A stretch of DNA of 64,000 nucleotides from Hyalangium minutum (GCF_000737315.1 NZ_JMCB01000009.1:186001-250000); one strand, 5' to 3'; counted from the first letter of the stretch, positions 8,627 to 52,379 are shown. A program made the numbers and translations. Notes: generated from the letters alone by a model not told the origin.

Positions 8627-9235
8627 TCAGGCTGCCGAGGAGGTGAGGAACTCCTCCAGCAGCTTCCGCCCATCGCGGAAGACGCACCAGCCGTCACCCA
8701 CGAGCAGGGCCTCCAATCGATCATAGGAGAGCACCCGCCGGAGCGAGGCCAGCGCCTTGGCTCGATCCTTGAGGTTCTGCTCGGGCTTCAGCAGCATCAG
8801 CTCGCCCGCGCGGTGCGAGCGCAGCAGGTCGCCCGCGATGAACGTCGTGTCCTCCAGCATCAAGGCCAGCTCACCGGGAGTCTTCGAGCCCTCCATCTCC
8901 AGGACTCGAAGCCCCGGTACCACCTCGTCCCCGTCCTGCAGCCAGCGATCACACGGGACGGGGAACCCTTCCCGCTCCGCCGCGGGCCCCGCGAGCTTGG
9001 CACCGAACTCCGCGGCAATCTCCTTGGCGCCGCGCACATGGGCCGAGTTGGTCACCACGATCCAAGCCGCGCCGCCCAGCTCCCGCAGGTGCTTGCGGTC
9101 ATGCTCGGACATTGGCAGTGGATCGATCAGGACGTTGCCGCCCTCGCGGATCCAGGCAAAGCCGTTGAAGTCGATGTCGAGCCGCTCGGCGAATGTGGAC
9201 CAGCAGTAGAGATCCTTGCGGTGCAGCCGCTTCAT
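8627..9235 (-). CDS. Metallo-beta-lactamase-fold protein (short, degenerate motif)
   Basis: NVLIDP, VVTNSAHVR (degenerate HxHxDH region), GSKTPGE, FIAGD, LLVGDG. Confidence 0.7.
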   Translation of the reverse strand: MKRLHRKDLYCWSTFAERLDIDFNGFAWIREGGNVLIDPLPMSEHDRKHLRELGGAAWIVVTNSAHVRGAKEIAAEFGAKLAGPAAEREGFPVPCDRWLQDGDEVVPGLRVLEMEGSKTPGELALMLEDTTFIAGDLLRSHRAGELMLLKPEQNLKDRAKALASLRRVLSYDRLEALLVGDGWCVFRDGRKLLEEFLTSSAA

Positions 9236-9294
9236 GGTGGGCGCTCCCTGAACCGAAGAGTGGAAGTCGATAACCTGCCTCGCACCCTACTCCG

Positions 9295-10635
9295 TCACAG
9301 ACGGCCGTGGGGAACCCGTCCCTGCTTCAGCGCCTCCACCTGCATGAAGGTGAAGGGTTGATCGTAGAGCACCCGGTCCTGCTGCCGCGTCCGGAAGAGA
9401 TCGACGATGAGGTTCATCCGATCCCCCAGGTCGCCCCAGTCCCTCGCCGCGCTCCCCGCCGTATCGTTCGGTGTTCGGTCCAGCGTCGCCATCAGCGAGA
9501 CGAGCTCCGGGTGCCCCAAGCGCGCGAGCGTGGGCGGGAAGTCCCGCTCGGCGTTCAGCGCCGGGATGTCCTCCCCGAGCCGCAGCGTCACATCCGGCAG
9601 CTCCAGCCGCATCAGCGATCGCGTCATCAGCTCCCGCCACAGCCGCTCCAGCTTGCCGGCGAGCGGACTGAAGGCGGCCTTCAGCGACATCTCGTGAAAC
9701 GGGCTCCCCTTGCGCGCCGACGTCACCCCCATCAGCTCCACCACCTGATCGAGGACCACCTGCCGCAGCGGCGCATGCAGCGCGCCCAGGATCGGCCCCT
9801 GGAGCCGGGTCTGCTCGTGGTAGCCCACCAGCGCGTTGGCCAGGAAGATGCGCTCGGCCCGCGCCTTGGTGTCCTGCTCGAACATGGCCTCGTAGGAGTG
9901 GGTAAAGGCCCGGATCAGCAGATCCTGTCCCTCACGAGACACTGGCCCCCGCGAGAGCCTGCCCAGGAACCGATCCAGCGTCGCCTGCTCGTACTGCTCG
10001 CTGTCCGAGAAGTGCTCGATCATGGCCACGAACAGTGGCGCGAGCTCCTCGAAGACCAGGAGATTGCCCCGAGCGACGTGCCGGGCCACCTCGTCCGCGA
10101 TCTGCTGGATGGCCCGCGTGAGCACCGTCTGGATGCCGAAGGGCGCCGCCCACGAGCCCAGCAACTCCGCCTGCAGCCCTCCCACGCTCCGCGTGAGCGA
10201 GTCCGCGCGGTCCAGCATCTCCCGGCTCAGAGAGGGCACCACCTCCTTGCGGATGAAGAACCCGGCCGTCTTCGAGGCCCACGTGGCGTGCGCGCACCAG
10301 GAGACGTTTTCCTCCCCGAGCAAGTCCGTCAGGGCGGTTGTCAGGACATGGTACGTGTGTGTGATGTGGAGGTTGCGCAGGACCGGGTCGGTCATGCGAA
10401 GAATCGCCTCGATCTCCGACGCCGTGGGGACCGGCCAGAAACGAGGCAGCGTGCCCCTCACCACCACGAGCCGCTCCGCCGCCAGCGAAGGAGCCGAGAC
10501 CCGGGTCCCCGTCCTCGGTCGCGCGGTGCGGCCCGAGCGCCCCCTCTGCGCACGCCCCGATCGGGGTGTGCCCGAGGGCCTCCCAGGGCTCTGCCGTGAC
10601 GATCGCCGGGGTCCCATTGCCCGCTCCTTGCCCAT
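9295..10635 (-). CDS. Hypothetical protein (possibly DUF2515-like)
   Basis: Strong GC3 bias and conserved-looking motifs NLHITHTYH, WCAHATWASKTAG, HEQTRLQ. The R/P-rich N-terminus may be an over-extension. Confidence 0.6.
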   Translation of the reverse strand: MGKERAMGPRRSSRQSPGRPSGTPRSGRAQRGRSGRTARPRTGTRVSAPSLAAERLVVVRGTLPRFWPVPTASEIEAILRMTDPVLRNLHITHTYHVLTTALTDLLGEENVSWCAHATWASKTAGFFIRKEVVPSLSREMLDRADSLTRSVGGLQAELLGSWAAPFGIQTVLTRAIQQIADEVARHVARGNLLVFEELAPLFVAMIEHFSDSEQYEQATLDRFLGRLSRGPVSREGQDLLIRAFTHSYEAMFEQDTKARAERIFLANALVGYHEQTRLQGPILGALHAPLRQVVLDQVVELMGVTSARKGSPFHEMSLKAAFSPLAGKLERLWRELMTRSLMRLELPDVTLRLGEDIPALNAERDFPPTLARLGHPELVSLMATLDRTPNDTAGSAARDWGDLGDRMNLIVDLFRTRQQDRVLYDQPFTFMQVEALKQGRVPHGRL

Positions 10636-10683
10636 GGGAGGCAGCGACCCGTGAGGCGAGCGCCTGCCTGATCCCCTGCTGGA

Positions 10684-12486
10684 TCAGACGATGCGGAACA
10701 CCCGCCCTGTGGGCACGAAGGGCAGGTGCCGCCCCTGCGGCAGCAGGAAGGCGTGCTCGCGCCGGAGCTGAAGCCGGTCGCACTCTCCATCCGTGATGAT
10801 GAGGATGGGCCCCTGTTTCGGGAAGTCCTCGGCTCGCTCCAAGAGATCGATCCCTGGCTGGAGGACCGTGCCACCTCGGCCGCGCACCCGCACCCGCTCG
10901 GCGATGGCCTCGGGTGCGACATAGCCTTCGTCGTACGCCACTGCGTCACAGAAGACGAGCCGCACCCGGGACACGTCCCGCGCCAAGCTGTAGCTCGCGA
11001 TGGCCCCGAGCGCCTTGGCCAGCAGCTTGCGGTCCATGGAGCCTGACGTGTCCAGCACCACCCCGAAGGTTCTCCCCTCCTGGGATTCCTCCCGAGGCAC
11101 CCACAGCGGCCGAGGAATGTCAGGGGTGGCCGACTGGCGCCGGCTGAGCCGTGTGTACGTCCGCCGCTTCTCCAGCGGGGAGAAGTGCGCGTCGAACCAC
11201 TGCGCCAACTCCACGTCCCATGGAATGGGCGGCTGATCCAGTGCGCGGATCTCCTCCACCAGGCCCGCAGGCAGGAAGCCCCGGCCCTCGGACTGGTGGT
11301 ACGCGAGTCCCTGCGACAAGCAGCGCCGGTAGAAGGCATCGAGCGTCATGCCATCGCCGTGCAGCCACCACTCGGGAGTGGTCCCGTCCAGCATGTCCCC
11401 GAGCCCGTAGCCGCGCAGCGTGGCCAGCTTCCGGTAGCGGCGCACGTCCGTGACAATCCGATCGTAGATGGCCTCCGCAGACAGCCCCTTGAGCTCGGGA
11501 TCGTAGAGGACGCCGAAGCTCGGCAGCTCGCCGACGCCCATCTCCACCAGCCAGCCGTTCACCACGTAGTCGCAGGCGACGTTCCACAGATAGGGATCCC
11601 GCCCCTGGCGGCGTGACTGGTGACGCAGGCCCACGTGAAGCAGTTCGTGCGCGATGACGAAGCGAGCGCTGCCCTCGTACAGCCCGGCCGAGGGGTTCAC
11701 GTAGATCTCCCGCGCCTCCTCGTCCACCGCCGCCACGGTGATCTGCATCCGCTGACAGACCAGCGGATCCTCCACCAGAGTGAAGTGCGCCGCGAGCGAG
11801 CCGAGCAGGGGGAACCGGGAGATGAACCACGAGCGCGCCCGCGAGGCCTCCGTGTGCACGCGCTCGCGCGGACTCATGGACTGCCGCAGCCCCGCAGCCA
11901 GCTCCACCGCCGAGTCCACCGCCTGCACGAGCCCCTGGGCCAGCAGCTTCTCCCAGTCCTGCTCCTGGCGGGTACTGGCCATTCCCACATCGACCATGTC
12001 GTAAGAGTTCGGGCCCGCCGCCCCGCAGCCCGCCAGCTTGGGAGGAATGCCGTCGCGAACGAAGCTCTCGTACAACCGCTCCTCGCTCTTGGAGCCGAAG
12101 TCCAGCTCCACCAGCATGTCCTCCGGCGGACGTCCAAACTTCAGATCCTTCAGGAAGCGCGCCACGAAGCAGTCGCACGCCGTCTGCCAAGCCACGGGCT
12201 CGGGGACGAGCTTGAAGTGGCCCAGTCCCAGGTGCAGCAGGCAGTGGGCGATGACGTAGGCCCACTCCTCCACCGAGCCGCGCCGCTTGGGATGCGCGTA
12301 GAGGACTCCGCCCGGGCCCACCACCATCCACCCGTTGGGCGGATACGGCGTGCTCTCGCGCCGGTACACAGCCGCACGCCACATCAGCGGGCCGAAGATG
12401 GGGTGGGCGCGCACCGTGCCGACGGCCTGCTCGAAGGCCTCAGTGGCGGGATCTCCTCCGCGCTTCTTGTCCTCCTTACGCGCCAT
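10684..12486 (-). CDS. DUF2201-type metallopeptidase + vWA protein with duplicated peptidase module
   Basis: AHCLLH and AHELLH motifs, each followed by an ACD motif; MIDAS VLDTSGSM, GGT and ITDG; overlaps the upstream ATPase by 11 bp. Confidence 0.85.
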   Translation of the reverse strand: MARKEDKKRGGDPATEAFEQAVGTVRAHPIFGPLMWRAAVYRRESTPYPPNGWMVVGPGGVLYAHPKRRGSVEEWAYVIAHCLLHLGLGHFKLVPEPVAWQTACDCFVARFLKDLKFGRPPEDMLVELDFGSKSEERLYESFVRDGIPPKLAGCGAAGPNSYDMVDVGMASTRQEQDWEKLLAQGLVQAVDSAVELAAGLRQSMSPRERVHTEASRARSWFISRFPLLGSLAAHFTLVEDPLVCQRMQITVAAVDEEAREIYVNPSAGLYEGSARFVIAHELLHVGLRHQSRRQGRDPYLWNVACDYVVNGWLVEMGVGELPSFGVLYDPELKGLSAEAIYDRIVTDVRRYRKLATLRGYGLGDMLDGTTPEWWLHGDGMTLDAFYRRCLSQGLAYHQSEGRGFLPAGLVEEIRALDQPPIPWDVELAQWFDAHFSPLEKRRTYTRLSRRQSATPDIPRPLWVPREESQEGRTFGVVLDTSGSMDRKLLAKALGAIASYSLARDVSRVRLVFCDAVAYDEGYVAPEAIAERVRVRGRGGTVLQPGIDLLERAEDFPKQGPILIITDGECDRLQLRREHAFLLPQGRHLPFVPTGRVFRIV

Positions 12487-13537
12487 CCTTGCGCTCCACC
12501 AGCCGAGGCAGATCGCGCACGATCTCCAGCAGCAGCCAATCCGGCAGCCCCTCGCCGTCCTGCCGTGCCACCACCATCTGCGCCATCTCGAAGCTGATGG
12601 CCGCCAGGTTCTTGATCAGCGCCTTGGCCCGGTGCGCCAGCTCGCGGTGGTGCTCAGCGAGCGCCTCGCGCGTACGCGGCAGCTCCTTGATGAGCTGGGC
12701 CCGCAGCGACTGCGAGAGGAAGTAGAGGACATCCCGATCCTCGGGCGCGTGGGGCCAGCCCATCTCGCCCCGGAGGATGGCGTTGAGCCGATACTTGCTG
12801 CGCGCCTGCTTCACGAACGCCTTGAACTGCCCCGCGTGCACGGGCGAGAGGCACCCGTAAGCCAGCACCTCCAGCGTGGCGTCCGGCACGTCCCCGCCAT
12901 ACTCCTTGAGGGCGTCGCTGAGCATGTGCCACGAGCGCGGCGTGGAGAACGGCTCCTCGTGCTTGGGAGGATTGCTCCAGAGGTGGTCTGGCCGCAGGCG
13001 GATGTAGTCGAGCACCATCGGGTGGAGTTCGGCCTGATGCGCCCACTCCAGCCAGTCTTGGTGCGAGGCCTGGAGCTGCACGTGGATCATCCGGTTGATG
13101 AGCGCCGAGGACATGGGCTTGACGATCGCGCTGTCCTGCGCCCGGTTGCCCGCGCCGATGACGATGGAGCCCGGGGGCAGCTCGTACTCGCCGATGCGCC
13201 GCTCGTGGATGAGGCTGTAGAAGGCCTTCTGCACCTCGTGCGAGCAGGCGTTCAGCTCGTCCAGGAAGAGGCAGTAGGGCTCACTGCGGGCAATCATCGT
13301 GGGCGGGCAGAAGCGGCTCTTGCCGTCGACGATCTGCGGCACACCGATGAGGTCCTCGGGCGCGAGCTGGCTGCCCAGCAACGACACGCACGGCAGCCCC
13401 ACCTGCTTGGCGAACTGCTGGACGATGGAGGACTTGCCGATGCCCGGTGGCCCCCAGATGAACACCGGCCGGATGACTGCGACGTGGAGGAGATACTCGG
13501 CCAGCGACTTCTGGGTCAGCGTCTGGACAGCGTTCAC
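12476..13537 (-). CDS. MoxR/dynein-related AAA+ ATPase
   Basis: Walker A GPPGIGKS, Walker B LFLDE, AGNRAQD, SALINR; GTG start with AGGAG RBS. Confidence 0.9.
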   Translation of the reverse strand: MNAVQTLTQKSLAEYLLHVAVIRPVFIWGPPGIGKSSIVQQFAKQVGLPCVSLLGSQLAPEDLIGVPQIVDGKSRFCPPTMIARSEPYCLFLDELNACSHEVQKAFYSLIHERRIGEYELPPGSIVIGAGNRAQDSAIVKPMSSALINRMIHVQLQASHQDWLEWAHQAELHPMVLDYIRLRPDHLWSNPPKHEEPFSTPRSWHMLSDALKEYGGDVPDATLEVLAYGCLSPVHAGQFKAFVKQARSKYRLNAILRGEMGWPHAPEDRDVLYFLSQSLRAQLIKELPRTREALAEHHRELAHRAKALIKNLAAISFEMAQMVVARQDGEGLPDWLLLEIVRDLPRLVERKDGA

Positions 13538-13612
13538 TCGGGAGTGCTCCTGGTGCCGTGGGCTCCGGAGGCCCCATGACGACAGGAGTGCGGACTTCTG
13601 ACAATCCCCGGG

Positions 13613-13711
13613 TCAGACCTTCAGGCCCGACCGGAATCGCCTCAGCACCGGCCCCAGCTCGCTCCCGGCGTTCACCTTCCACATCAGCAGCTCGGGAGGA
13701 GGCCGCGTCAT
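13613..13711 (-). CDS. Putative 32-aa ORF coupled to the RT stop (MTRPPPELLMWKVNAGSELGPVLRRFRSGLKV)
   Basis: ATGA overlap with the RT stop codon (13711-13708); mostly G/C-ending codons. Could be a remnant or spurious. Confidence 0.35.
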   Translation of the reverse strand: MTRPPPELLMWKVNAGSELGPVLRRFRSGLKV

Positions 13712-15123
13712 TCGCCCAGCAGCTCCTTCACCTCGCGCTGCCAGCGCTCGCCCAGCTCCGGGTGCACCATCTTCACGTACGCTGCGTAGCCTCGCAGCCA
13801 GCCCGAGAAGTCCTTGCGGCCCCGCGACTGGGACTCCACGCCGTGCTTGCGGCAGTTGTTCAGGATCGCCTTGAACCGGCGGCGCTCCTCGCGAGGAATG
13901 GACACCTGCTCGTTCACCGTCAGGCCCGTCACCCTCTGGCGCGAGTTCTTGCGCATCACCCGCCGCTTCGGCGCGTTCTCCAGGAAGCCCTCCTGCTGGA
14001 GGATGGCGTTCACCCACCACAGGAAGCGCCCCAGCTTCTCGGGCGGCTTCTCGAAGGAGAAGGACAGGTCATCCGCGTAGCGCGTGTAAGTGGCACCCGC
14101 CTTCTTCGCCAACGCCGTGAGCCGAGCGTCCATGCGCCGGCACACCAGGTTTGCGATCGCCGGAGACGTGGGCGCTCCCTGCGGCAGTGCTCCCGGCCAC
14201 ACCACTGTCCCATCCGGCAGCTTCGGCCGGTGCGTGGAGAGCCCCGCCAGCGTGCGGGCCACCTCGTCACCGTAGCCGTGCGCCTGGAACAGACCCTTCA
14301 CGCGCCGGTAGTGCACCGTGGGGAAGAAGTCCTCCAGATCCACGCGCACCACCACCGTGGCGCCCGTGTGCGGCTCGGCGTTGCTCACCGTGGAGCGCCC
14401 CTTCACGAAGCCGTGCGCGGCGTCGTGCGTGGGCATCTGCTCCAGGATCTTCTCGAGGATGGCGCGCTGCACCTCCTTGAGCTTCGCCCGAGGCGCCGAG
14501 ATGCGGCGCACCCCGCCCGAGCGCTTGGGCACCTCGAACTCCACGTACCCCGAGCCCGCCTCCGTGCCCGGCCGCATCAGCGCGGCGAGCTCCTCCTCTT
14601 GCACGCCCACCAGCTCCGCCACATCCTTCCGGGTGGACAGCTTGGGCAGCTTGCCCTTCAAGGGAGGCTGCTTCTTGGGGCGCCCTCCCCAGCGCATGGG
14701 GAGACCGAAGTTCCAGCCCGTGGGGTTCCAGCCGCCGCGGGACTGGGGCGTCGGGTGGCGCGGCGGCTTGAAGCGACGGTCCGGCGGCGCCACATCCGCC
14801 AGCCCCAGCTTGTGCACCGCGGCCCGCGCCGCTCCCGCCACCTGCTTGTCAGGGTCCTTCACCAACCGGCGCAGCTGCGCCGAGGCCGTTGCCCGCGCGA
14901 AGAGCAGCGGGATCTGCTGCGTGCCCTGGTGCCGCTCGCGCGGGTCCACGCTGCGCAGCATGCGCCCCACCGGCGCCAGCCACTGGCGGCTCACGTAGAA
15001 GCGCGCCACCTCGTACTCGGCCAGATTCTGGTGCTGCTCCAGCAGCGCGGTGATGCGCTTGAAGTTCGCTTCAGGGTCCGCCATCAGGGGCTTCAGCTCG
15101 AGGAGGAGGCCCACCAGGTCCAT
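13708..15123 (-). CDS. Retron-type reverse transcriptase with N-terminal HEAT-like helical extension
   Basis: Region X NAEPH, DLEDFFP, LPQGAPTSP, YADD, region Y VTG (RVTGLTV). Start placed at ATG 15123 (alternative 15129) downstream of GGAG. The longer ORF from 15504 runs through the ncRNA. Confidence 0.92.
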   Translation of the reverse strand: MDLVGLLLELKPLMADPEANFKRITALLEQHQNLAEYEVARFYVSRQWLAPVGRMLRSVDPRERHQGTQQIPLLFARATASAQLRRLVKDPDKQVAGAARAAVHKLGLADVAPPDRRFKPPRHPTPQSRGGWNPTGWNFGLPMRWGGRPKKQPPLKGKLPKLSTRKDVAELVGVQEEELAALMRPGTEAGSGYVEFEVPKRSGGVRRISAPRAKLKEVQRAILEKILEQMPTHDAAHGFVKGRSTVSNAEPHTGATVVVRVDLEDFFPTVHYRRVKGLFQAHGYGDEVARTLAGLSTHRPKLPDGTVVWPGALPQGAPTSPAIANLVCRRMDARLTALAKKAGATYTRYADDLSFSFEKPPEKLGRFLWWVNAILQQEGFLENAPKRRVMRKNSRQRVTGLTVNEQVSIPREERRRFKAILNNCRKHGVESQSRGRKDFSGWLRGYAAYVKMVHPELGERWQREVKELLGE

Positions 15124-15167
15124 TCCCATGCTCTCCCGGGGCTGCGGCCCCGCGCGTCGAAACCACT

Positions 15168-15326
15168 GCGCTCCTGGGGCCGCCGCCACCTGCACGGCAG
15201 ATGCACGAGTGGTCAGGGAAGCCCGCAAGGCGGACCACGCGCTGCGTCGTTCTTCAATGGGTATCGCTGGCAGCCGCGACGTGACATCGCGGACGGAAGG
15301 CTGGCTGCACGCGACCCCAGGAGCAC
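15168..15326 (-). ncRNA. Retron msr-msd non-coding RNA
   Basis: Transcript 5' arm GUGCUCCUGGGGUCGC (15326-15311) pairs with 3' arm GCGGCCCCAGGAGCGC (15183-15168): 16 bp including 2 G-U pairs. First unpaired base is G15310. Internal hairpins CCGCGAUG-UCA-CGUCGCGG, GUGGUC...GACCAC and CAUCUGC-CGU-GCAGGUG. Lies 45 nt upstream of the RT start. Confidence 0.8.
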
Positions 15327-15364
15327 TGTTGACTCCAGCACATTCGATTCCCAGAGGGAAGCAT

Positions 15365-18241
15365 TCACCGGGTCGGGGGAGGCTCGCCCTCCTCATCGAG
15401 GAGTGCCAGGAAGGTGTCTCGCGTCCCCCCGGGTGCCTGGCGGATGAGGGCGTTGAACTGCTGGGCCCGCGCGCGGACCCGCGCTCCGTGGGCCTGCATG
15501 GCACCGAGAGCCTCGGGGACCATGGTGGGCCGGGCGAGCACCTCCAGGTTCTGCGCCAGCTCGCGGTGGCTGCGGGGTGCGGAGAGGCAGGCGCTCACGC
15601 CGGGCTGCGAGAGGCTGTAGCGGTAGCAGTCCACCGCCGTGGGGAGCACGGCGTCCGCGGGCACCCCGGGCGCGGGCTGGAGCAACCGGCCATAGCAGGT
15701 GGCCGTGAAGGTGAGGACTCCAGTTCCCCGCGCGAGCGCCTCGGGGAAGAAGGAGGACTCCGCGCCTCGGTATGCGGCGCTGTGGCGCGTCATCACCACG
15801 GGCCAGGGGCGGCTCCGGATCGCTTCCGTGGCCACGTCTCGCAGGTGGGTGGAGAAGCCGAAGGCGCGGAGCTTGCCCTCGGCGCGGAGCTTCTCCAGGG
15901 CCTCGAAGTCCTCGTCATTGAGGCGCTCAGGCGAGCGCACCCAGAAGAGGAGAAAGACGTCCAGCCAGCTCGTGCGCAGCTGGCGCAGCGCGGACTCCAC
16001 GTCCCGGCGGAGCGCCGCAGGGCCCGAGTGGTACGAGCCCGCGACCAGCACGAGTCCCTCCCGCTGGCTCCGGAGAGAGCGCAGGAAACGGGTGAGCTGG
16101 AGGTACTCTGTCTCCCAGAAGAAGGTGTTCACACCGGCCTCATGGGCCTCGGCCAGCGAGGCGGCGGACAGGCCGTTGGCGCCCGAGAGCACCAGCGGGG
16201 AGACGCGCAGCCCCGTGTTCCCGAGGAGGCGCAAGGAGGGCCGAGAGGGGCTCTCGGGAGGCGTGCGCTTCGTGGGGGTCTTGTCCCGGCGAGGCCGTGT
16301 GGGCCGGCGCTGCTCCAGGTCAGGGGCTGAGGAGAAGACCTCGTCCGGGAAGATGAGGGTCATCGCCTCGAGGTGGGCGACCACCCGCTGTGGCTCCGAG
16401 GTGTCTCGTAGCGCGGCGGCCAGGTGCTGGAAGGCGGTGGAGTCCGCACGGCGCAACAGCCAAGTGTAGGCGGAGGCGCGAAGATCGGGCTCCCGCGTAC
16501 GCATGGGGCCTCGCAGCAGGCCGGCCAAGAGCGCGTCGAGTGTCTCGCACGCCTCGAGCACGGCTGCGGCAGCGGCTCGAACCATCGGAGAGGAATCGAG
16601 CGACAGGCGAAGGAGCGCCTCCAGTTCTTCCCGTGCGCCCTCTGCGTGAAGCAACTCTGCGCCACGGGCGCGCATCCACGGATCGGGGGAGCGCGCGCTG
16701 GCAAGGCCCACGCTGCGCAGTTCATTCGGTGAGAGGCTCACGCGGTGGGAGGCCAGGAGCGCGAGTGCCGATCGCCGTACCGAGAGGTCCGGATCGGACT
16801 CACATGCCTCTCGCGCCGAGGTCACGTCCAGCACAGCCGTGCGGATCCAGGGGTCCTCGTGCGAGAGGGCGTCGCGGCGTTCCTCCTCCGTGAGGGTTCC
16901 CTGCTCCGAACGCTCCCCGAGGGCCACTGCACGAACCGACACATCGGCATCGGTCGAGAGGCGCGCGAGCAAGGCCTCGTCGCCGACGCACCCGGCGGCC
17001 CCCGCAACGGCGCGGCGCTCGTGCGGAGTACAGGCCTGGGGAGCGAAGGCCACGAGGGCCCGCGCGAAGGCCAGAATGGCCGAGGGCGCAGGAGGCCGCT
17101 GCTCCCAGGCAGCGATGACCTCGTCACGCACGGACGCGTCCGGGTCACTGAGCGCAGCGAGCACCACTTCGCGGCTTGCGGGATCGTGTACGAGACCGGA
17201 GAGAGCTGCGCGCCGGACGGCGGGCTCCGCATGCCGGGCCAGGGCTTGGACCTGCTGGATGAGCTCGGGGTGATCCCTGCGCACCGCGATGCGGGCGGCC
17301 CAAGCGACCGCGCCCGGCCTTGGAGGTTCACCGAGGATACGCGAGGCCAGGGCGAGTTCATCCAGGTCGATCCGCTGAAGCAGAGAGCGAACCTCATCGG
17401 CGGAGTGAGGAACGCGCGGCTCATCCAGCCAGCGCATCACGAGCCTGACAGCCTCGGGATCCCGGAGTTCGATCAGACGCCGCCGCGCGAGGGAACGGAG
17501 CGGCTCGTGCGGATCTCCCAACCACTCCACCAGCTTGATGAGCGGCACCTCTGAGGCAGAGAGCCGCTCAAGCCGGGCTGTGACCACGGCGGGATCCTGG
17601 TCGTCCAGTCCCGCCTCGGCAGGTACCGGGAGAGGCCCCGCGAAGCTGCCCTCCTGAGGTGACGGAGCGGAAGAAGTCCAAGCGCCTTCGAGATACGCGG
17701 CGGCCGCCCGGACTGAACCGGGCCCTGCTGCATCACCTACGGCGCGCACACGTTGGCGGACCTCCGCGTGGGTCTCTCCCAGCCAGAGCAGCGCCTGCAC
17801 GGCCGCGCTTCGCACCCGCCAGAAGGGATCCTCTAAAGTTTGGATGAGCAATTCGAGCGCGCCGGTGCCTGCGACGGAGGCAGCAGCTCTGACGGCGGCC
17901 CGCCGCACCCACCAGACCGGCTCCTCACGGACGGCCTGTTCCGCCTGAGGAAGCAGTTCCCGCGTCCCCATTCGGGCCAGGGCGCGCCACACGCGATCGC
18001 GAACCATGGGAAGAGGGTCGCGCAGCGCCTCAATGAGCGCGCGGGCAAAGAGGCGATCCCGCGCCTCGCCGAGCCGCCGTGCGGCGGAGGCCCGGACCTC
18101 GGCGTCCTCATCCCCCAACAGGGCCTGCCTGAGCGCGTAGCGGCCCGTGAGCGTCGTGGCATCCACGGCGTCCACAGCCTCGCGGCGCACCTCAGCGGAC
18201 TCATCGAACAGCCGCACTGCGGCCGGGTTCAAAGGCGTCAT
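15365..18241 (-). CDS. HEAT/ARM-repeat protein fused to a C-terminal aldo-keto reductase-like domain
   Basis: Many L.DP...VR..AA.AL repeats over the first ~660 aa; AKR-like N-terminal motif LGNTGLRVSPLVL at ~16.24 kb, plus SALRQLRTSWLDVF and KLRAFGFSTH. Confidence 0.85.
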   Translation of the reverse strand: MTPLNPAAVRLFDESAEVRREAVDAVDATTLTGRYALRQALLGDEDAEVRASAARRLGEARDRLFARALIEALRDPLPMVRDRVWRALARMGTRELLPQAEQAVREEPVWWVRRAAVRAAASVAGTGALELLIQTLEDPFWRVRSAAVQALLWLGETHAEVRQRVRAVGDAAGPGSVRAAAAYLEGAWTSSAPSPQEGSFAGPLPVPAEAGLDDQDPAVVTARLERLSASEVPLIKLVEWLGDPHEPLRSLARRRLIELRDPEAVRLVMRWLDEPRVPHSADEVRSLLQRIDLDELALASRILGEPPRPGAVAWAARIAVRRDHPELIQQVQALARHAEPAVRRAALSGLVHDPASREVVLAALSDPDASVRDEVIAAWEQRPPAPSAILAFARALVAFAPQACTPHERRAVAGAAGCVGDEALLARLSTDADVSVRAVALGERSEQGTLTEEERRDALSHEDPWIRTAVLDVTSAREACESDPDLSVRRSALALLASHRVSLSPNELRSVGLASARSPDPWMRARGAELLHAEGAREELEALLRLSLDSSPMVRAAAAAVLEACETLDALLAGLLRGPMRTREPDLRASAYTWLLRRADSTAFQHLAAALRDTSEPQRVVAHLEAMTLIFPDEVFSSAPDLEQRRPTRPRRDKTPTKRTPPESPSRPSLRLLGNTGLRVSPLVLSGANGLSAASLAEAHEAGVNTFFWETEYLQLTRFLRSLRSQREGLVLVAGSYHSGPAALRRDVESALRQLRTSWLDVFLLFWVRSPERLNDEDFEALEKLRAEGKLRAFGFSTHLRDVATEAIRSRPWPVVMTRHSAAYRGAESSFFPEALARGTGVLTFTATCYGRLLQPAPGVPADAVLPTAVDCYRYSLSQPGVSACLSAPRSHRELAQNLEVLARPTMVPEALGAMQAHGARVRARAQQFNALIRQAPGGTRDTFLALLDEEGEPPPTR

Positions 18242-18260: not shown

Positions 18261-18292
18261 CCTTGGTAGAATCGCGCCCATGCCTGACATGC
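18261..18292 (+). repeat. Direct repeat copy 1 (extended -10 TGgTAGAAT + ATGCCTGACATGC)
   Basis: CCTTGGTAGAATCGCGCCCATGCCTGACATGC; 31/32 identical to 20470-20501. Confidence 0.9.
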
Positions 18293-19641
18293 GGGCGTTG
18301 CAGGGGAAGATGCGCTGGGTGCTCTCGCACCGGTTGGGGCCTCTGGCGCTGGCCCTGCTGGTGGGATGCAGCAGTTCCACGCGGATCCTGCGCCTGGAGG
18401 CGGAGCAGCCCGAGCCCATCGTCCACATTGCTCCCGGAGACCGAGCGCCCGTGCGAGTGGACAGCGCGGCCTTCCTGGAAGCCTTCTCCACGCATGCCTT
18501 GCAGGTGCAGCCTGCCCCACAACCGCTCCAGCAAGCGCAGCGCTTGTGGCTGCTCCCCTCTCGAAGCGCTCCCTACGCCACTGCGCGCAGCCGCCTGGGC
18601 CTCGTCTCCGTGAATACTCAAGAGGACATGCCTCGGGGTCACCTGCTTCCAGAGACCTCTGCAGCGGAGGGCTCCATTTCGCGTGATTATGGCCTGTGGT
18701 GCGAGAGCCGCTCCCTGCCTCTGGACTGCCTTCAGCTACTGGACGGGGGAGCACTGCTGAGCCATGACGGCAAACGCGCCCTGGCCCTGCACTTCGCCCT
18801 GACCTCCCTCTGGCTGGAGACGAAAGACGCGCTGGAGCAGATGGTGGACCCGTTGGCGATTCAGACCACCCTCGTCTCCGCCATGACGATGTACCTCATG
18901 CTCTGGGTTCTTCCCGAGCCTCTCTCCAAGGGCATCGCTGCGGCCATGACCGTGGCCCTTATTGGCTACCTGGGCTTCGACACTGTCTGGAGCCTGTTCC
19001 AAGGGTGGGCCCTGCTGGTCGAGGACGTGGACAAGGCCACCTCCTTCGACCAGGTACGGGATGCCGGACGCCGGTTCAGCAGAGTGCTGGGGCCCAACGC
19101 CGCCCGTGTCTTCGCCATGCTCTTCACTGTCGCCGCAGGCAACACGGCGGCCGGCTTTGCCTCCAAGCTGCCCTCCCTACCCGGCGCGCCTCAGGCAACC
19201 CTGGCAGTTGCAATCCCTGGAGGTACCCCTCTCTCCCTCGCGGCCGCGGTGGACTCCGTCACCGTCTCCGCCTCAGGCGCCACCCTCGTCCTGGCACCTG
19301 GCGCCGTGGCCATGGCCAGCTCGGGCGACACGACCGTCTACATCTCGAGAAACGGAGGACAACTCCAATACGTAGGCATCACGAACGACCTTGCACGGCG
19401 CGCAGCGGAGCAACTCCGCGAGAAGGGAATCCACATTGAAGACCTGATGAATAATCTCTCAAGAGAGGATGCTCGTGCCGTCGAACAAGTCCTCATCGAG
19501 ATCCATGGTCTTCAGAAGAATGGCGGTACTCTTCTGAACCGCATCAACAGCATTGCTCGCTCAAACCCCAAGTACGCCCGCGCGCTGCGTCGAGGCAAAG
19601 AACTCCTCAAGACCCTCAAGAATGGGGACCAATTGGAATGA
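18280..19641 (+). CDS. SitA5-like polymorphic toxin lipoprotein with GIY-YIG/URI-type nuclease tip
   Basis: Lipobox LLVGC; conserved myxobacterial body (YGLWCE, DCLQLL, PEPLSKG, GFDTVW, APGAVAM); AT-richer tip VYIS...YVGITNDLARR...EQVLI. True start may be ATG 18310. Confidence 0.75.
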   Translation: MPDMRALQGKMRWVLSHRLGPLALALLVGCSSSTRILRLEAEQPEPIVHIAPGDRAPVRVDSAAFLEAFSTHALQVQPAPQPLQQAQRLWLLPSRSAPYATARSRLGLVSVNTQEDMPRGHLLPETSAAEGSISRDYGLWCESRSLPLDCLQLLDGGALLSHDGKRALALHFALTSLWLETKDALEQMVDPLAIQTTLVSAMTMYLMLWVLPEPLSKGIAAAMTVALIGYLGFDTVWSLFQGWALLVEDVDKATSFDQVRDAGRRFSRVLGPNAARVFAMLFTVAAGNTAAGFASKLPSLPGAPQATLAVAIPGGTPLSLAAAVDSVTVSASGATLVLAPGAVAMASSGDTTVYISRNGGQLQYVGITNDLARRAAEQLREKGIHIEDLMNNLSREDARAVEQVLIEIHGLQKNGGTLLNRINSIARSNPKYARALRRGKELLKTLKNGDQLE

Positions 19642-20456
19642 CCGGCTCGCGCAAAAAAGCGAAGTTCGGAGACATCGCCGAAGTTCGCACGCCTCGAGGG
19701 CTCGCCTATGTGCAGTACACCTCCAAGCATCCGAGATACAGCGATACCATCCGTGTGCTTCCTGGGCTTTTCAAGATACGCCCTTCTAACGACGAACTCG
19801 CTGCGCTCGCAACCCAAGAAGGGTACTTCGTCTTCTATCTTGTGAGCCTCGCCGTCAAACATGGGCTTGTGGAGATCATCGGTCATTACCCGATCCCCGT
19901 AGGGCTCGATGCTCCAGCCAAGCTGCTGAGAGTCGGCTTCATCGCGCCCGGGGGAAAAGTCATGACCTGGGTTCTTCTCGAAGGCGCTAAGGAGACTCTC
20001 ATCAAGAGAGAGCTCTCTCCCGAGGAGAAACGCCTCTCTCGCGCTTCTATGTGGAACCACGAGTATCTGGTGCAGCGCCTGGCAGAGCAGTGGCGGCCTG
20101 AACATGAGCATGAGCCACGCCCGCCCGCTCCCGTGACCAGCACGCCGCCGGAACCTTCGGGACAAGCGGAAGCGCCCCCCACCGCGTCCTCCGCCACCAC
20201 TCCGCTGCGCATGAGCCACTACCTCTACTTCCCTCTCACCAAGGACGGTAAAGCCGTCGCTGCAGAACTGCGTCGCCGTGGCTTCGAAATCGAGAGCCGC
20301 AAAGGCGCCGATGGTGTGAACTGGCTCGTCCTCGTCCACCACACCCTCTCCTCCTCCGAGGATGAGGCCGCGCTCACCGTCCGCGACGAACTGGAGCGCC
20401 TCGCCCAGCAACACTCCGGCGAGTATGACGGCTCGGAGACCGCGCTCCCGGAGTGA
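19638..20456 (+). CDS. Cognate immunity protein (Imm26-like N-terminus + RraB-like C-terminal domain)
   Basis: ATGA overlap with the toxin stop; N-terminal GDIAEV...YVQY pattern; Pro-rich linker; C-terminal HYLYFP...GEYDGSET. Confidence 0.6.
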   Translation: MTGSRKKAKFGDIAEVRTPRGLAYVQYTSKHPRYSDTIRVLPGLFKIRPSNDELAALATQEGYFVFYLVSLAVKHGLVEIIGHYPIPVGLDAPAKLLRVGFIAPGGKVMTWVLLEGAKETLIKRELSPEEKRLSRASMWNHEYLVQRLAEQWRPEHEHEPRPPAPVTSTPPEPSGQAEAPPTASSATTPLRMSHYLYFPLTKDGKAVAAELRRRGFEIESRKGADGVNWLVLVHHTLSSSEDEAALTVRDELERLAQQHSGEYDGSETALPE

Positions 20457-49127: not shown

Positions 49128-49708
49128 ACTCCCCTGCCCTGCATCCGTCGACGTGGACCGCCCTCAAGATGTCGGGGGTGCTTCAGAGCACCGAGCACGG
49201 GCTCATCCAGAACTTCTACGGCACACAGAGCGCCAAGCGCAGCCAGGTTCCCTTCATGAACCACATTCATGAAGGGCTGGCAGTCATGCTCTGCACCGGC
49301 GCATCGCTTCAGGCGATGCGAGCGTTCTGCCTGCACCCGCTCGTTCAGAGCGACGCGGATCTAAAGAGCCAGTACGCCCAGATCACCCGGGCGCTGGAGA
49401 CTGTTCCTGACGGGGCCTTCGTGTTGGGACTCGCCATGGAGTACCGCTCCGTGGCCAACGAGTACGTCTCGCATCGCCCCATGCCACCCGAAGGCATCCG
49501 GCTCTCCCCACTGGCGGAGGTCAACGCCATGCTGGTGGGTGACAAAGTTCAGAACCGCAAGGACTTCGAGCTGTACCACGCGGAGACGCACGAACGCCGC
49601 GATCGGCTCGCCGAGTACTTCCAGCAGTGGTGCCAAGCGTTGCAGATCGAGCCGCTCTACCCTCAGTTCAAGGCGATGCTACAGGGCGCGGAGTGGACGG
49701 GCTCGTGA
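49115..49708 (+). CDS. Hypothetical protein, possibly divergent HD-fold
   Basis: PFMNH...FCLHPLVQSD...DKVQNRKD loosely follows the SpoT/Mesh1 hydrolase pattern with HD replaced by HP. Confidence 0.5.
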   Translation: MSAPNSPALHPSTWTALKMSGVLQSTEHGLIQNFYGTQSAKRSQVPFMNHIHEGLAVMLCTGASLQAMRAFCLHPLVQSDADLKSQYAQITRALETVPDGAFVLGLAMEYRSVANEYVSHRPMPPEGIRLSPLAEVNAMLVGDKVQNRKDFELYHAETHERRDRLAEYFQQWCQALQIEPLYPQFKAMLQGAEWTGS

Positions 49709-49808
49709 GTGCAGGCTGCGTGTTGCCGAACCCAGTTCCTCGTAAATGGGCACCCAAGAGCGGAAGATGCTGACGAACGCCTCGGCACGGCCGTACCAAG
49801 AAGAGTCG

Positions 49809-50525
49809 ATGAGCCGCTACTACTGGATCCGTGAGGCGCGGGAGCCTCGGCAGACCGGCCACCTCGACGCCTCCCACCCGTGGGGGTTGCCGGGTCTGAG
49901 CTGTCCCACCTGTGGCGTGACCTGGGCTGGAAGCGCTTCGGCTTTCCCCAGCGTGGATCTCACGTCACTGCCCGAGCGCGCCGCGTTCGAGAAAGCCCAG
50001 CCGGAGCCCCTCGATGAATTCGCGCGCCGGCGGGAGTTGGTCCGTCCGCTGGTGCCGCCCGGCGCGCAGCTTTTGCCAGGAGTGGAGTTTGGTCCGTTGG
50101 AAGGAACGGCTTCTGGCTCTTTTGGCCAGTTCTTCCTTCAGAGCGCATGGATGCCGCTCATCCGCCGAGAAGCATGGGAGCGCCTTCAGTCGGCAGGGTT
50201 GCGAGGGCTGCGAGCGTTTCCCACCCGGCTTCGCTTTCGTCAAAAGAACCCGCCGGAGTTGCTTGAACTGGAACTGACCGCGCAGGGAAACCTTCACCCG
50301 GATTGCTTCTTGCCAGAGTTCCCCACGCGCTGTGCGCACTGCGACCGCCTCGGCGCCCGCCGTCCAGAGATTATGATCCTGGAGGCAGCCTCTTTGCCTG
50401 ATCAATGCGATTTGTTCCGGCTGGCCGACTTCGAGACAACTCTGATCGGCACGGAGCGCTTCATGAATACCGTGCGGCGTTTAGGGCTGGATGGTGCCGA
50501 ATGCGATGCTCTTACCGTGCGGTGA
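49809..50525 (+). CDS. Double-CXXCG motif protein (SitI6-type immunity), orphan
   Basis: HPWGLPGLSCPTCG and CAHCDRLG, DLFRLADF; no cognate toxin adjacent. Confidence 0.8.
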   Translation: MSRYYWIREAREPRQTGHLDASHPWGLPGLSCPTCGVTWAGSASAFPSVDLTSLPERAAFEKAQPEPLDEFARRRELVRPLVPPGAQLLPGVEFGPLEGTASGSFGQFFLQSAWMPLIRREAWERLQSAGLRGLRAFPTRLRFRQKNPPELLELELTAQGNLHPDCFLPEFPTRCAHCDRLGARRPEIMILEAASLPDQCDLFRLADFETTLIGTERFMNTVRRLGLDGAECDALTVR

Positions 50526-50731
50526 CCCTAGAGTCCGGAGCGCCTGTGGAGGTTCGACATCTGCTCCGTGCAGTCTTGCAGGTGAGGAAGCAAGAACCTA
50601 CTACTCCTGACCGAGAGCAGGGATCCAGCGCCATCCCCATCCCACCTGACCGCCTGTTCAGATAACACCTACGGGCTTCCTTGTCTTAGGAAGAGCTATC
50701 GTTTCAAGCGTCTCGAAAGGACGGCGCGACG

Positions 50732-51949: not shown

Positions 51950-51959
51950 TTATCAGTCC

Positions 51960-52260
51960 GCGGGGAGTTCACATCCACAAGGACGCGATCGCTGTCAGAC
52001 AAATCAGCAATGACATACCAAGATCCAGATCCACCCATGTGTCCGAATTTCGCATATATGCGGGCTCTTTGGATCTAGGACAATCCGCGAAATATTTGAC
52101 TTGGAAGAGCCGCTCCATTGCTGTGCAAAAAGAATGCACACATTTCCAGTTCTAGACGCCATTTTTGCTGCTTCTCAAAAGCCTCAATCTCTTCAGGAGC
52201 AACGGAAGCATTGGGAAAGTGATGGGAGGAGAGTTCCTTCAACAAGGGCTCGATTGACAT
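51960..52260 (-). pseudogene. SMI1/KNR4-family immunity gene remnant
   Basis: MSIEPLLKELSSHHFPN...EEIEAFE...FFLHSNGA in one frame and GSWYVIADLSDSDRVLVDV in another. Frameshifted and truncated next to the kinase 3' end; downstream boundary approximate. Confidence 0.6.
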
Positions 52261-52379
52261 AGGTTTCAGCCCGCAGATGCCCAATTAGCCACGAACCCTT
52301 GTCCACAGAAAAGGGACTTCCCGGAAGGGTGGCAAATCCCGCAAGGTGCGCGGATCACCTCCGCCCCGGGAAGGTTCCC

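Follow-up and report, generated by a model that had tools for sequence, protein, structure and literature searches.

How many systems are encoded by the minus-strand cluster at positions 8627 to 18241 of the Hyalangium minutum window (the whole 64,000-nt stretch analyzed, GCF_000737315.1 NZ_JMCB01000009.1:186001-250000)? A sequence-only reading had proposed a single multi-gene retron, in which a HEAT scaffold holds the reverse transcriptase (RT) and its msDNA while a MoxR ATPase and a vWA-peptidase protein act as the effector. All of the genes and the msr-msd RNA are found where that reading placed them, every one on the minus strand (Table 1). We consider it probable, however, that the region consists of two unrelated units lying side by side, namely, a retron at 13613-18241 and a MoxR/DUF2201 cassette at 10684-13537.

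Table 1. Features of the region, in window coordinates
Feature	Position	Strand	Basis
HEAT-AKR protein, 958 aa	15365..18241	-	Pfam HEAT_2 E = 1e-30, HEAT E = 3e-16, Aldo_ket_red E = 3e-7
Promoter-like element of the ncRNA-RT transcript (predicted)	15332..15360	-	Conserved motif and spacing
Retron ncRNA (msr-msd), 165 nt	15165..15329	-	Inverted repeat, covariation
Short helix GCCA/UGGC	15302-15305 with 15185-15188	-	Covariation
Candidate priming G	15301	-	CAGC context; inferred
Invariant msr hairpin	15274-15292	-	Alignment A1
msd stem-loop	15203-15245	-	Covariation
Retron RT, 473 aa (471 from ATG 15123)	13708..15129	-	RVT_1 E = 2e-22
32-codon ORF ("sORF"), remnant of TIGR02996-LRR gene	13613..13711	-	Alignment to L001 LRR gene
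MoxR-class AAA+ ATPase	12476..13537	-	AAA_5 E = 5e-13; Walker A GPPGIGKS; Walker B LFLDE
DUF2201_N/DUF2201 protein	10684..12486	-	DUF2201_N E = 1e-26, DUF2201 E = 5e-7
446-aa protein, no family	9295-10635	-	Pfam and PADLOC; outside both modules
Lactamase_B_5 metallo-beta-lactamase-fold protein	8627-9235	-	Pfam and PADLOC; outside both modules

The claim that a retron is present was borne out by the RNA as well as by the enzyme. The ncRNA has a 19-nt inverted repeat with 84% complementarity, the arms of which lie at 15311-15329 (a1) and 15165-15183 (a2). As described earlier, a1 begins close behind the HEAT-AKR stop (35 to 38 nt), and a2 is followed after 35 to 45 nt by the RT start codon (ATG 15129 or 15123). 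Taken alone, the window ncRNA has no significant fold (z = -1.4), and Rfam gave no match to it either at the gathering threshold or at E ≤ 10. In an alignment of 38 related ncRNAs (alignment A1), RNAalifold identified 14 pairs with compensatory changes, and the a1/a2 stem showed such change in 9 of 13 pairs. A manually built structure paired 95.6% of cells across the same 38 sequences, compared with 34 to 48% in slid controls; 19 of its pairs change on both sides (4 to 8 in the controls), and none of 500 shuffles reached the observed score. This covariation covers the a1/a2 stem, the GCCA/UGGC helix, and the msd stem and extends to the copies from Nannocystaceae, while the msr hairpin is invariant in all 38 sequences. 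Duplication of the ncRNA, with new a1/a2 arms, has taken place in some lineages, and some carry two to three ncRNAs in tandem. The tetranucleotide CAGC occurs at both 15300-15303 and 15304-15307. Since retrons prime from a G in a CAGC or TAGC context (PMC6868368) and distant copies of the ncRNA read UAGC, it is probably G15301 that primes synthesis.

Upstream of a1 lies a promoter-like element, TTCCCT followed after 17 nt by TGTGC-TGGAGT, with a predicted start at the 5' end of a1. This element was not called by a generic sigma-70 scan; the pattern TTCCC...TGTG-N-T....T upstream of a1 keeps its spacing in loci from both Cystobacterineae and Polyangiaceae.

The RT carries the motifs NAEPH (NAxxH) at residue 250, YADD at 351, and VTG at 400, all of which are invariant in 31 relatives (alignment A2). 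A PADLOC search, which had been suggested as a check, matched it to 59 retron RT models, the best being RT_XIII (395 bits, E = 1e-118, versus 333 bits for RT_other), although RT_XIII was matched only over positions 107 to 423 of 469. Retron RTs (Ec86, Eco2, Eco7, and Ec78) were also the top Foldseek matches of its AF2 model (pLDDT 79.8), and the core shares its fold with the RTs of Ec86/Eco1, Ec78, Ec83, Eco7, Eco8, and Eco2 (E = 1e-14 to 1e-18). Together, the covarying RNA and the retron-type motifs and fold of the RT indicate that the retron is genuine. We describe the RT as type XIII-like, its placement in clade 10 being taken from the best HMM score and not from a tree. In the model, a six-helix HEAT-like N-terminal domain (residues 1 to 108) and a disordered linker (residues ~109 to 165) precede the RT core. 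The earlier label "HEAT-RT" needs one qualification: the six-helix repeat and the Pfam HEAT_2 matches at residues ~55 to 116 of relatives that are 57 to 61% identical speak for it, but no HEAT is detectable by Pfam in the N terminus of the window protein itself.

The HEAT-AKR protein had been put forward as a partner of the RT, with co-occurrence across genomes as the way to check it, and here the proposal held up well. Of 42 related loci (numbered with the prefix L where named below), 35 have its gene next to the RT, in three myxobacterial suborders and one planctomycete. The other seven are L019, whose chromosome carries the gene at a distance of 29 kb, and six loci for which the upstream sequence is short or incomplete (0 to 3.4 kb). 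Linkage thus spans Hyalangium, Polyangium, Nannocystaceae, and a planctomycete, and even HEAT-AKR homologs of merely 38 to 45% identity are still followed by one or more ncRNAs and the RT. The pair also survives rearrangement, persisting in divergent orientation in L038 and despite 1.5 to 29 kb of inserted cargo in Archangium; the planctomycete pair is divergent in orientation and has identical pseudo-catalytic motifs in its HEAT-AKR protein. The synteny could in part reflect inertia, the locus being vertically inherited, but this reading is weakened by the planctomycete case and by the survival of the pair across a 29-kb insertion. By these patterns of conservation, we regard HEAT-AKR as a true conserved retron partner.

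The AKR domain occupies the C terminus of this protein (residues ~675 to 945). An AF2 model of the last 301 aa (pLDDT 91.6) matched AKR11A, AKR11C1, and AKRtyl in Foldseek (TM 0.62 to 0.72). Upon alignment to 6cia and 4wgh, the Asp-Tyr-Lys-His catalytic tetrad was not found in HEAT-AKR: the Lys is replaced by Gly (VAGSYH, residue 733) and the His by Phe (LLFWVR, residue 764), and the Asp position reads FFWE. Both the Lys and the His replacements are common to all 23 aligned family members. The domain, then, has the reductase fold but lacks the catalytic Lys and His and is predicted to be non-catalytic. Also among the Foldseek matches is SmbA, a nucleotide-messenger receptor (rank 45, TM 0.67 to 0.74). 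This Caulobacter protein (PDB 7b0e) has a TIM-barrel AKR fold without reductase chemistry, as is predicted for HEAT-AKR, and the likeness is one of fold only.

The short ORF behind the RT gene is present as reported, but its interpretation as a separate gene did not stand. Its start codon and the RT stop codon overlap in the sequence ATGA, its 5' end aligns with the start of an LRR gene in locus L001, and its 3' end aligns with the last codons of that gene (RFRSGLKV* versus RFGPGLKL*). By this alignment, the sORF is what an in-frame deletion has left of a third conserved retron gene, which the sequence-only reading had missed. The intact gene encodes ~325 aa with a TIGR02996 domain (39 bits against a cutoff of 29) and LRRs (LRR_6 and LRR_4 also match). 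Its ATGA overlap with the RT gene is seen in 21 loci, namely, 17 among the first 38 together with L041, L046, L048, and L049. A similar remnant, of 36 codons, is found in L006, and the gene has been lost repeatedly among the related loci. The ancestral retron would have comprised a HEAT-pseudoAKR gene, the promoter and ncRNA, an RT with a HEAT-like N-terminal domain, and a translationally coupled TIGR02996-LRR gene, in this order; in the window, an in-frame deletion has cut the LRR gene to 32 codons and left the other three parts intact.

The MoxR ATPase shows the hallmarks of a MoxR AAA+/vWA pair, namely, Walker A and Walker B motifs and an adjoining MIDAS protein, and it scored 25.7 against the bpMoxR model, below the cutoff of 27. 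The DUF2201 protein has two metallopeptidase-like domains, one degenerate (HCLLH) and one intact (HELLH), followed by a vWA domain (MIDAS DTSGS), and the overlap of its gene with the ATPase gene was confirmed and measures 11 nt. As a two-gene unit of an AAA_5 MoxR and a MIDAS vWA protein, the pair resembles NorQ-NorD, RavA-ViaA, CbbQ-CbbO, and the MoxR-vWA conflict systems (Kaur et al. 2020, PMC7159879). The overlap of the two genes is part of this resemblance. The pair differs from these systems in the N-terminal DUF2201_N metallopeptidase-like domains of its vWA protein, and it has no conserved third gene, be it a "VMAP" or an effector, next to it.

Is this pair the effector of the retron? 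The single-system model can draw on the common strand of all genes, on the conserved junction, in which MoxR starts 75 nt past the remnant stop in the window and 41 nt past the LRR gene in L001 on the same strand, on the presence of the cassette near the RT in six of the nine closest genomes (window included), and on the reported linkage of MoxR-vWA systems to other RTs (DGRs) in multicellular bacteria (PMC7159879). Yet, only 5 of the 42 related loci have the cassette near the RT. All five belong to the closest clade, and in these the distance varies from 1.0 to 3.0 kb with other genes in between: L007 has an arginase-like gene there, L008 an LRR gene and 2 kb more, and L003 and L004 carry unrelated ORFs. 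The 37 loci that lack it include L002, L005, and L006, the RTs of which are equally close (83 to 86% identity). Conversely, MoxR is paired with DUF2201 with no RT nearby in L042 to L045, and DUF2201 relatives of 60 to 69% identity occur in Nannocystis, Pyxidicoccus, cyanobacteria, Brevibacillus, Paenibacillus, and Armatimonadota, the cassette standing alone without an RT in Firmicutes and cyanobacteria. MoxR is 94 to 96% identical among the Hyalangium-clade loci and still 69% identical to the Brevibacillus protein. In one genome, that of Pyxidicoccus parkwayensis, the cassette is 6 Mb away from the retron. Furthermore, PADLOC gave no meaningful match for MoxR or DUF2201. We consider it very unlikely, therefore, that the pair is the retron effector; by its distribution, MoxR/DUF2201 is an independent two-gene cassette, a neighbor and not a retron component. 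It would be a widespread, mobile remodeling unit that landed 3' of the retron in the Hyalangium clade. The 170-bp gap between RT and MoxR and the TTGTCA hexamer at 13604-13599 are both present as noted before, but this gap yielded no two-hexamer promoter, and L001 does not share the hexamer. Read-through co-transcription from the retron into MoxR may occur in the sub-lineage of the window and L001.

The retron itself might be a canonical, already defined system. Type XIII corresponds to RT clade 10 with Retron-Mxa1/Mx162, Sau1/Sa163, Nex2/Ne144, and Mxa2/Mx65 (Mestre et al. 2020, PMC7736814). Its primary protein (cluster 114_1) has a DEDE motif, a winged helix, and a C-terminal SWIM motif, CxCx12CxH, and its RTs associate and co-evolve with HEAT/ARM proteins (accessory clusters 216, 259, 1688, and 3262) (PMC7736814). 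Like the type XIII retrons, the window retron has RT_XIII as its best RT model, the extended RT N terminus typical of myxococcal retrons, the CAGC context of Mx162 and Sa163, a Myxococcota host (with planctomycete relatives), vertical inheritance, and an alpha-solenoid (HEAT/ARM) protein associated with the RT. The defining cluster 114_1 protein, however, is absent: the SWIM motif CxCx(10-16)CxH was found in none of the ORFs of >= 200 aa (GC3 ≥ 0.75) in the 42 RT loci, a search with a spacer of 6–25 found none in the predicted genes at 1 to 29.5 kb of the window, and PADLOC matched no SWIM protein among the neighbors tested. The sole PADLOC match of HEAT-AKR is the generic HEAT/ARM model HEAT-ARM_XIII, at just 33 bits and over 136 residues of a 1972-position model; the LRR protein, whose gene is translationally coupled to the RT in this family, has no PADLOC match at all. 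The RT_XIII match is partial, as described above, the ncRNA, at 165 nt, falls well short of the 241 nt of Mx162, some related lineages carry tandem ncRNAs, and NAxxH is intact whereas its Asn is lost in Mx65. Given these differences, the window retron is none of the validated myxobacterial retrons, and identity with a canonical type XIII system seems improbable to us. Apparently, HEAT-AKR has the same kind of fold as the type XIII HEAT/ARM proteins but belongs to a different family, one with a C-terminal pseudo-AKR domain. The system is best described, then, as a type XIII-like retron without the defining SWIM protein. Its designation as undescribed is justified for the AKR fusion, which is represented in none of the PADLOC type XIII models, but not for the type XIII-like RT and its HEAT/ARM association, which was already known (PMC7736814). 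The retron unit is likely to be chromosomal and largely vertically inherited within a myxobacterial lineage of this type.

We are reasonably confident, overall, in a real retron that has a HEAT-pseudoAKR partner and is unrelated to MoxR/DUF2201. How might it work? Judged by the conserved promoter-like motif, the ncRNA-RT transcript would start at a1. The a1/a2 stem and the short GCCA/UGGC helix form, as shown by covariation, and the CAGC guanosine, by its motif and position probably G15301, would prime synthesis. As in every retron studied, the RT would then reverse transcribe the msd stem-loop, which would give a branched msDNA of ~65 to 80 nt. Linkage across phyla, the HEAT-like domain of the RT, and the published co-evolution of type XIII RTs with HEAT/ARM proteins all suggest that the RT-msDNA particle would sit on the HEAT solenoid of the partner. 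As the AKR fold lacks the catalytic Lys and His, the pseudo-AKR domain would serve as a ligand- or protein-binding module and not as a reductase, and the LRR protein would be a dispensable adaptor or sensor. The solved tripartite retrons share with the window, as known from its sequence, an a1/a2-armed ncRNA beside the RT and the expected logic of an RT-msDNA particle with a partner. In contrast, their partners are toxins or nucleases (NDT, PtuAB, OLD/Toprim, and others), whereas the partner seen here is a scaffold with a pseudoenzyme in which no killing activity can be read.

An msDNA-guarded surveillance or defense complex is, tentatively, the most likely function. No toxin-like effector is recognizable among the conserved retron genes, which leaves the defense reading without an output step. 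Nearly as likely, if somewhat doubtful in its own right, is a domesticated housekeeping or developmental RNP of Myxococcota without an anti-phage role, in which the HEAT-pseudoAKR and LRR proteins are cellular interaction partners. The same possibility has been raised for type XIII by Mestre et al. (PMC7736814). The system is found, with conserved flanks, across the three myxobacterial suborders, the msr hairpin does not vary, the conserved core is devoid of any toxin, nuclease, TIR, protease, or transmembrane effector, and the chromosomal neighbors (CheB/CheR-PAS, a histidine kinase, and a sugar nucleotidyltransferase) are ordinary, all of which would suit a cellular role. Such a role fits less well with the repeated loss of the LRR gene, the ncRNA duplications with new a1/a2 arms, and the variable cargo at the locus, which includes an OLD-like ATPase, Rpn-like genes, and a SitA toxin. 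Moreover, to our knowledge, every retron tested to date acts in phage defense.

Two further genes lie outside both modules. Among the related loci compared, the gene for the 446-aa protein is seen only in the window and L001, while the metallo-beta-lactamase-fold gene and an adjoining alpha/beta hydrolase gene are ordinary syntenic neighbors in L002 to L007, with or without the MoxR cassette.

The HEAT-AKR gene, which encodes a HEAT-repeat protein fused to an aldo-keto reductase (AKR) fold, was found by tblastn upstream of the reverse transcriptase (RT) gene in 35 of the 42 loci that carry a related RT, which supports the partnership of the two proposed in the sequence-only reading of the window. 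Six of the seven exceptions are on contigs that end 0 to 3.4 kb upstream of the RT; in the seventh, Archangium minus, HEAT-AKR is on the same strand at a distance of 29 kb. At E <= 1e-10, the HEAT-AKR family numbers 196 proteins, and among the 120 matches listed, all named organisms are myxobacterial or "Deltaproteobacteria". Members that are only 38 to 45% identical (Nannocystaceae and a metagenome bin) are followed by a 450- to 550-nt spacer with copies of a noncoding RNA (ncRNA) and then the RT, and a Planctomycetaceae contig carries HEAT and AKR open reading frames (ORFs), divergent from the RT, with the same unusual motifs. The linkage thus outlasts inversion, insertions of 1.5 to 29 kb, and a change of phylum, which argues for a functional connection rather than inertia.

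The C-terminal 301 residues of HEAT-AKR are predicted to form an AKR TIM barrel (pLDDT, 91.6) that resembles AKR11A, AKR11C1, and AKRtyl (TM, 0.62 to 0.72). The catalytic Lys is replaced by Gly and the catalytic His by Phe, and these substitutions, together with FFWE at the Asp position, are kept in all 23 aligned members. Because the catalytic residues are replaced, the domain is best regarded as a conserved pseudoenzyme. The structural matches also include SmbA, a noncatalytic AKR-fold receptor. A literature search for retrons together with AKR, TIGR02996, or LRR returned nothing relevant.

The spacer between HEAT-AKR and the RT contains a retron ncRNA. Folded as a single sequence, the 165-nt stretch was no better than shuffles (z = -1.4), and we therefore relied on comparative data from 38 fetched genomic loci encoding RT relatives. 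All loci that extend far enough upstream contain the element. Across the 38 aligned copies, the msr hairpin CCGCGAUG-UCA-CGUCGCGG is invariant, and heavy compensatory change is seen outside it. In a covariation test of a manual structure, with pairing partners slid by 1 to 3 columns as controls, 95.6% of cells were paired (34 to 48% in the slid controls), 19 pairs had changed on both sides (4 to 8), and the observed score was equalled by none of 500 shuffles. In the complementary 5' and 3' arms, a1 and a2, 9 of 13 pairs covary, for instance GUGCUCCUGGGG/CCCCAGGAGCGC to GCUCACGGGAGG/CCUCCCGUGAGC in Polyangium. The comparative evidence shows that the RNA structure is real. Rfam recognized neither a retron nor any other family in the whole window at the gathering threshold or in 13400-15600 at E <= 10, and a literature search for the invariant hairpin sequence yielded nothing relevant.

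Directly inside a1/a2 is a short GCCA/UGGC helix (GCUA/UAGC in Nannocystaceae copies), the inner end of which leaves a G in a CAGC context (UAGC in Nannocystaceae copies). The priming guanosine of known retrons has the same position and motif (PMC6868368), and on this basis we propose G15301 as the branch point of an msDNA of probably 65 to 80 nt. A conserved pattern upstream of a1, TTCCCT, 17 nt, TGTG-N-TGGAGT, looks like an ncRNA promoter; a generic scan of 13400-15500 returned no promoter, and so no call for this pattern, and the single terminator-like site that it gave is in the wrong orientation.

The positions and distances reported from the sequence alone were off by a few bases at most, and a TTGTCA hexamer is present before the ATPase gene, as noted there. 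Antisense frames over the HEAT-AKR ORF, suggested by a GC3-based gene caller, were dismissed, since homology indicates that the minus-strand ORF (GC3, 0.81) is real.

Features of the window and of related loci (L numbers, genomic loci fetched for comparison)
Feature	Position	Strand	Remarks
HEAT-AKR, 958 aa	15365-18241	-	HEAT_2 E = 1e-30; Aldo_ket_red E = 3e-7
Spacer, 235 nt	between HEAT-AKR and RT		holds 19-nt inverted repeat
Inverted repeat, 19 nt	15311-15329 with 15165-15183
Promoter-like pattern	15360-15332
Reverse transcriptase, 473 aa	13708-15129	-	RVT_1 E = 2e-22
Gap, 170 bp	between RT and MoxR gene
MoxR-type AAA+ ATPase	12476-13537	-
DUF2201_N/DUF2201 vWA protein	10684-12486	-	overlaps MoxR gene
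Protein without family, 446 aa	9295-10635	-
Lactamase_B_5 protein (MBL fold)	within 8627-18241	-
SitA5-family toxin	18280-20456	+	toxin NCBIfam, 289 bits; span includes RraB-domain ORF
Double-CXXCG-type ORF	49746-50525
Ser/Thr-kinase-like ORF	50732-51949		HRDVKPANILL
Upstream gene, Myxococcus and Pyxidicoccus	L046:6275-6922, L048:7332-7964, L049:7331-7963	-	~210 aa, divergent
Upstream gene, Nannocystaceae type	L039:7623-7985, L040:7630-7992, L041:1443-1844	+	120-133 aa, codirectional
Cargo, HEAT-AKR/ncRNA split	L011:6700-9800, L014:5670-9800, L016:2030-9800, L034:7130-9800, L047 versus L019 (A. minus, 29 kb)
Cargo, ncRNA/RT split	L021:5800-9990, L024:6560-9990, L031:7700-9990, L036:8750-9990
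Tandem ncRNAs, Polyangium	L020:2810-3210, L021:5370-5775, L024:6150-6550, L031:7280-7680, L036:8340-8740
Tandem ncRNAs, Nannocystaceae type	L039:10900-11376, L040:10913-11360, L041:4776-5323

The RT matches 59 PADLOC retron RT models, best RT_XIII (395 bits; E = 1e-118), and its motifs NAEPH, YADD, and VTG are invariant in 31 relatives. An AF2 model (pLDDT, 79.8) comprises a six-helix repeat (residues 1 to 108), a disordered linker, and the RT core, and in structure it most closely resembles the RTs of retrons Ec86, Eco2, Eco7, and Ec78. The earlier label "HEAT-RT" is reasonable: Pfam finds no HEAT repeat in the N-terminal domain of the window protein, but the model has the six-helix repeat, and HEAT_2 is detected, at or near the gathering score, at residues ~55 to 116 of relatives that are 57 to 61% identical.

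Type XIII retrons are defined by clade-10 RTs (Mx162, Mx65, Sa163, and Ne144) together with a DEDE/winged-helix/SWIM protein and usually also have HEAT/ARM proteins that coevolve with the RT (PMC7736814). The window locus shares with them its RT affinity, N-terminal extension, CAGC context, host range, and solenoid theme. In contrast, scans for the SWIM motif of the primary type XIII protein, covering window genes to 29.5 kb and the ORFs of at least 200 residues in the 42 loci, found none, and the partner proteins differ from the ones for which PADLOC has models. Identity with Mx162, a type XIII retron and the first retron ever found, was rejected, the window transcript being 165 nt versus 241 nt. 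Mx65, with its msDNA of ~65 nt and a 49-nt RNA whose fourth base is G, is a rough match in size, but membership in that lineage was likewise rejected: in Mx65 the motif is GAGC and the Asn of NAxxH is substituted, whereas the window has CAGC and an intact NAEPH. We class the locus as a variant of the type XIII kind that falls outside type XIII in its defined sense.

The sequence-only reading had combined HEAT-AKR, ncRNA, and RT with a 32-codon "sORF" and the MoxR/DUF2201 gene pair into one system, and for the last two components the comparison points elsewhere. A gene whose ATG overlaps the RT stop as ATGA is present in 17 of the first 38 loci as well as L041, L046, L048, and L049. It encodes a ~325-residue protein with an N-terminal TIGR02996 domain (39 bits; cutoff, 29) and ribonuclease-inhibitor-like LRRs, which has no PADLOC match. 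The "sORF" is a remnant of this gene: it retains the ATGA start, some 10 codons from the beginning, and the final 9 codons, joined in frame (RFRSGLKV* versus RFGPGLKL* in L001); L006 has a similar remnant. The unit therefore originally comprised HEAT-pseudoAKR, ncRNA, RT, and TIGR02996-LRR, and the window carries it in shortened form. Loss of the LRR gene has occurred more than once, and none of the Polyangiaceae loci has it, which suggests that it is dispensable.

The MoxR/DUF2201 pair occurs near the RT only in L001, L003, L004, L007, and L008, at 1.0 to 3.0 kb and with differing intervening genes, and is absent from the equally close relatives L002, L005, and L006. DUF2201 proteins 60 to 69% identical are found in Nannocystis, Pyxidicoccus, cyanobacteria, Brevibacillus, Paenibacillus, and Armatimonadota, in four such contexts as a two-gene cassette with a 353- to 354-residue AAA+ protein and no RT. 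In Pyxidicoccus parkwayensis the two units are far apart, with the cassette at 3.15 Mb and the complete retron at 9.17 Mb. The sole point in favor of coupling is that in the window and in L001 the junction that follows the LRR gene is short and conserved, which could allow read-through transcription into the cassette. Judged by its distribution, the pair is an independent cassette, a passenger beside the retron. Such a neighbor mimics an effector module, and guilt by association in a single genome would have yielded a false "new system". PADLOC returned nothing meaningful for the MoxR, DUF2201, 446-residue, MBL, and LRR proteins. The MoxR protein is unusually conserved (94 to 96% within the clade versus 81 to 87% for the RT; 69% to Brevibacillus), and the DUF2201 protein has a degenerate metallopeptidase-like unit, HCLLH (residue 81), and an intact HELLH (residue 280).

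In the mechanism that we propose, the ncRNA would be transcribed from a1 and primed at G15301 to give an msDNA of ~70 nt, and the RT-msDNA complex would dock on the HEAT solenoid, perhaps via the HEAT-like domain of the RT itself. The pseudo-AKR may bind a ligand or protein, and the LRR protein might be a sensor that is not always required. We see no killing module in the retron locus. A role in surveillance or defense has a little under an even chance in our estimate, and domestication is a somewhat weaker candidate. Tentatively, and with the odds leaning against it, HEAT-pseudoAKR, one or more ncRNAs, HEAT-RT, and TIGR02996-LRR might constitute a distinct retron type, found throughout Myxococcota and in Planctomycetota, that lacks a toxin-like effector, has as its output a pseudoenzyme that is carried on a solenoid scaffold and senses a ligand, and in some lineages supplies one RT with two or three different ncRNAs from an array. 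If true, this would represent either a new defense logic or the domestication of a retron for some role in the cell. To our knowledge, type XIII is the one large retron class without known function, structure, or effector mechanism. The subfamily delineated here is clean and conserved, with an ncRNA model backed by covariation, a partner whose sole enzyme-like domain is inactive by sequence, and a dispensable second LRR partner; it offers a tractable entry point to type XIII-like retrons and raises the question of what a retron without a toxin does.

The arrangement of the parts varies by lineage, and variable cargo splits the retron at either of two sites: between HEAT-AKR and the ncRNA in Archangium and Vitiosangium, and between the ncRNAs and the RT in Polyangium. 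Genes for an OLD-like ATPase and an Rpn/YhgA-like protein are among the Polyangium cargo, and the RT there has its own promoter-like TTAAAA...TAGGAT. The separated parts would evidently work in trans. Polyangium has two tandem ncRNA copies ~207 nt apart after HEAT-AKR, each with a1/a2 arms of its own that compensate each other; the msd of the second copy is longer. Nannocystaceae-type loci have two or three copies, and in one of these the msr hairpin, invariant elsewhere, has changed in a compensated way. Several ncRNAs seem to be served by one RT.

The window has a GC content of ~67 to 70%, its nearest relatives are Hyalangium and other Myxococcaceae genomes, and a tRNA scan found none. One flank of the locus consists of ordinary chromosomal genes (CheB/CheR-PAS, hybrid kinase, nucleotidyltransferase, and hydrolase), and the other of a SitA5-family polymorphic lipoprotein toxin gene followed, with a 4-nt overlap, by a RraB-domain ORF that may be its immunity gene. 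The C terminus of the toxin resembles GIY-YIG (YVGITNDLARR), and local GC falls to ~64%; L001 carries a toxin of this family in the corresponding position (69% identity). The toxin gene occupies the slot directly upstream of HEAT-AKR in which other lineages keep a conserved gene of unknown function. The 446-residue ORF between the DUF2201 and MBL-fold genes has an Arg/Pro/Gly-rich N terminus and no Pfam, NCBIfam, or PADLOC match and is common to the window and L001 only. Farther away, a patch at 49700-52400 (GC, 51 to 58% versus 67%) contains two ORFs, a double-CXXCG-type and a Ser/Thr-kinase-like one with a Cys-rich C-terminal tail, and looks horizontally acquired.
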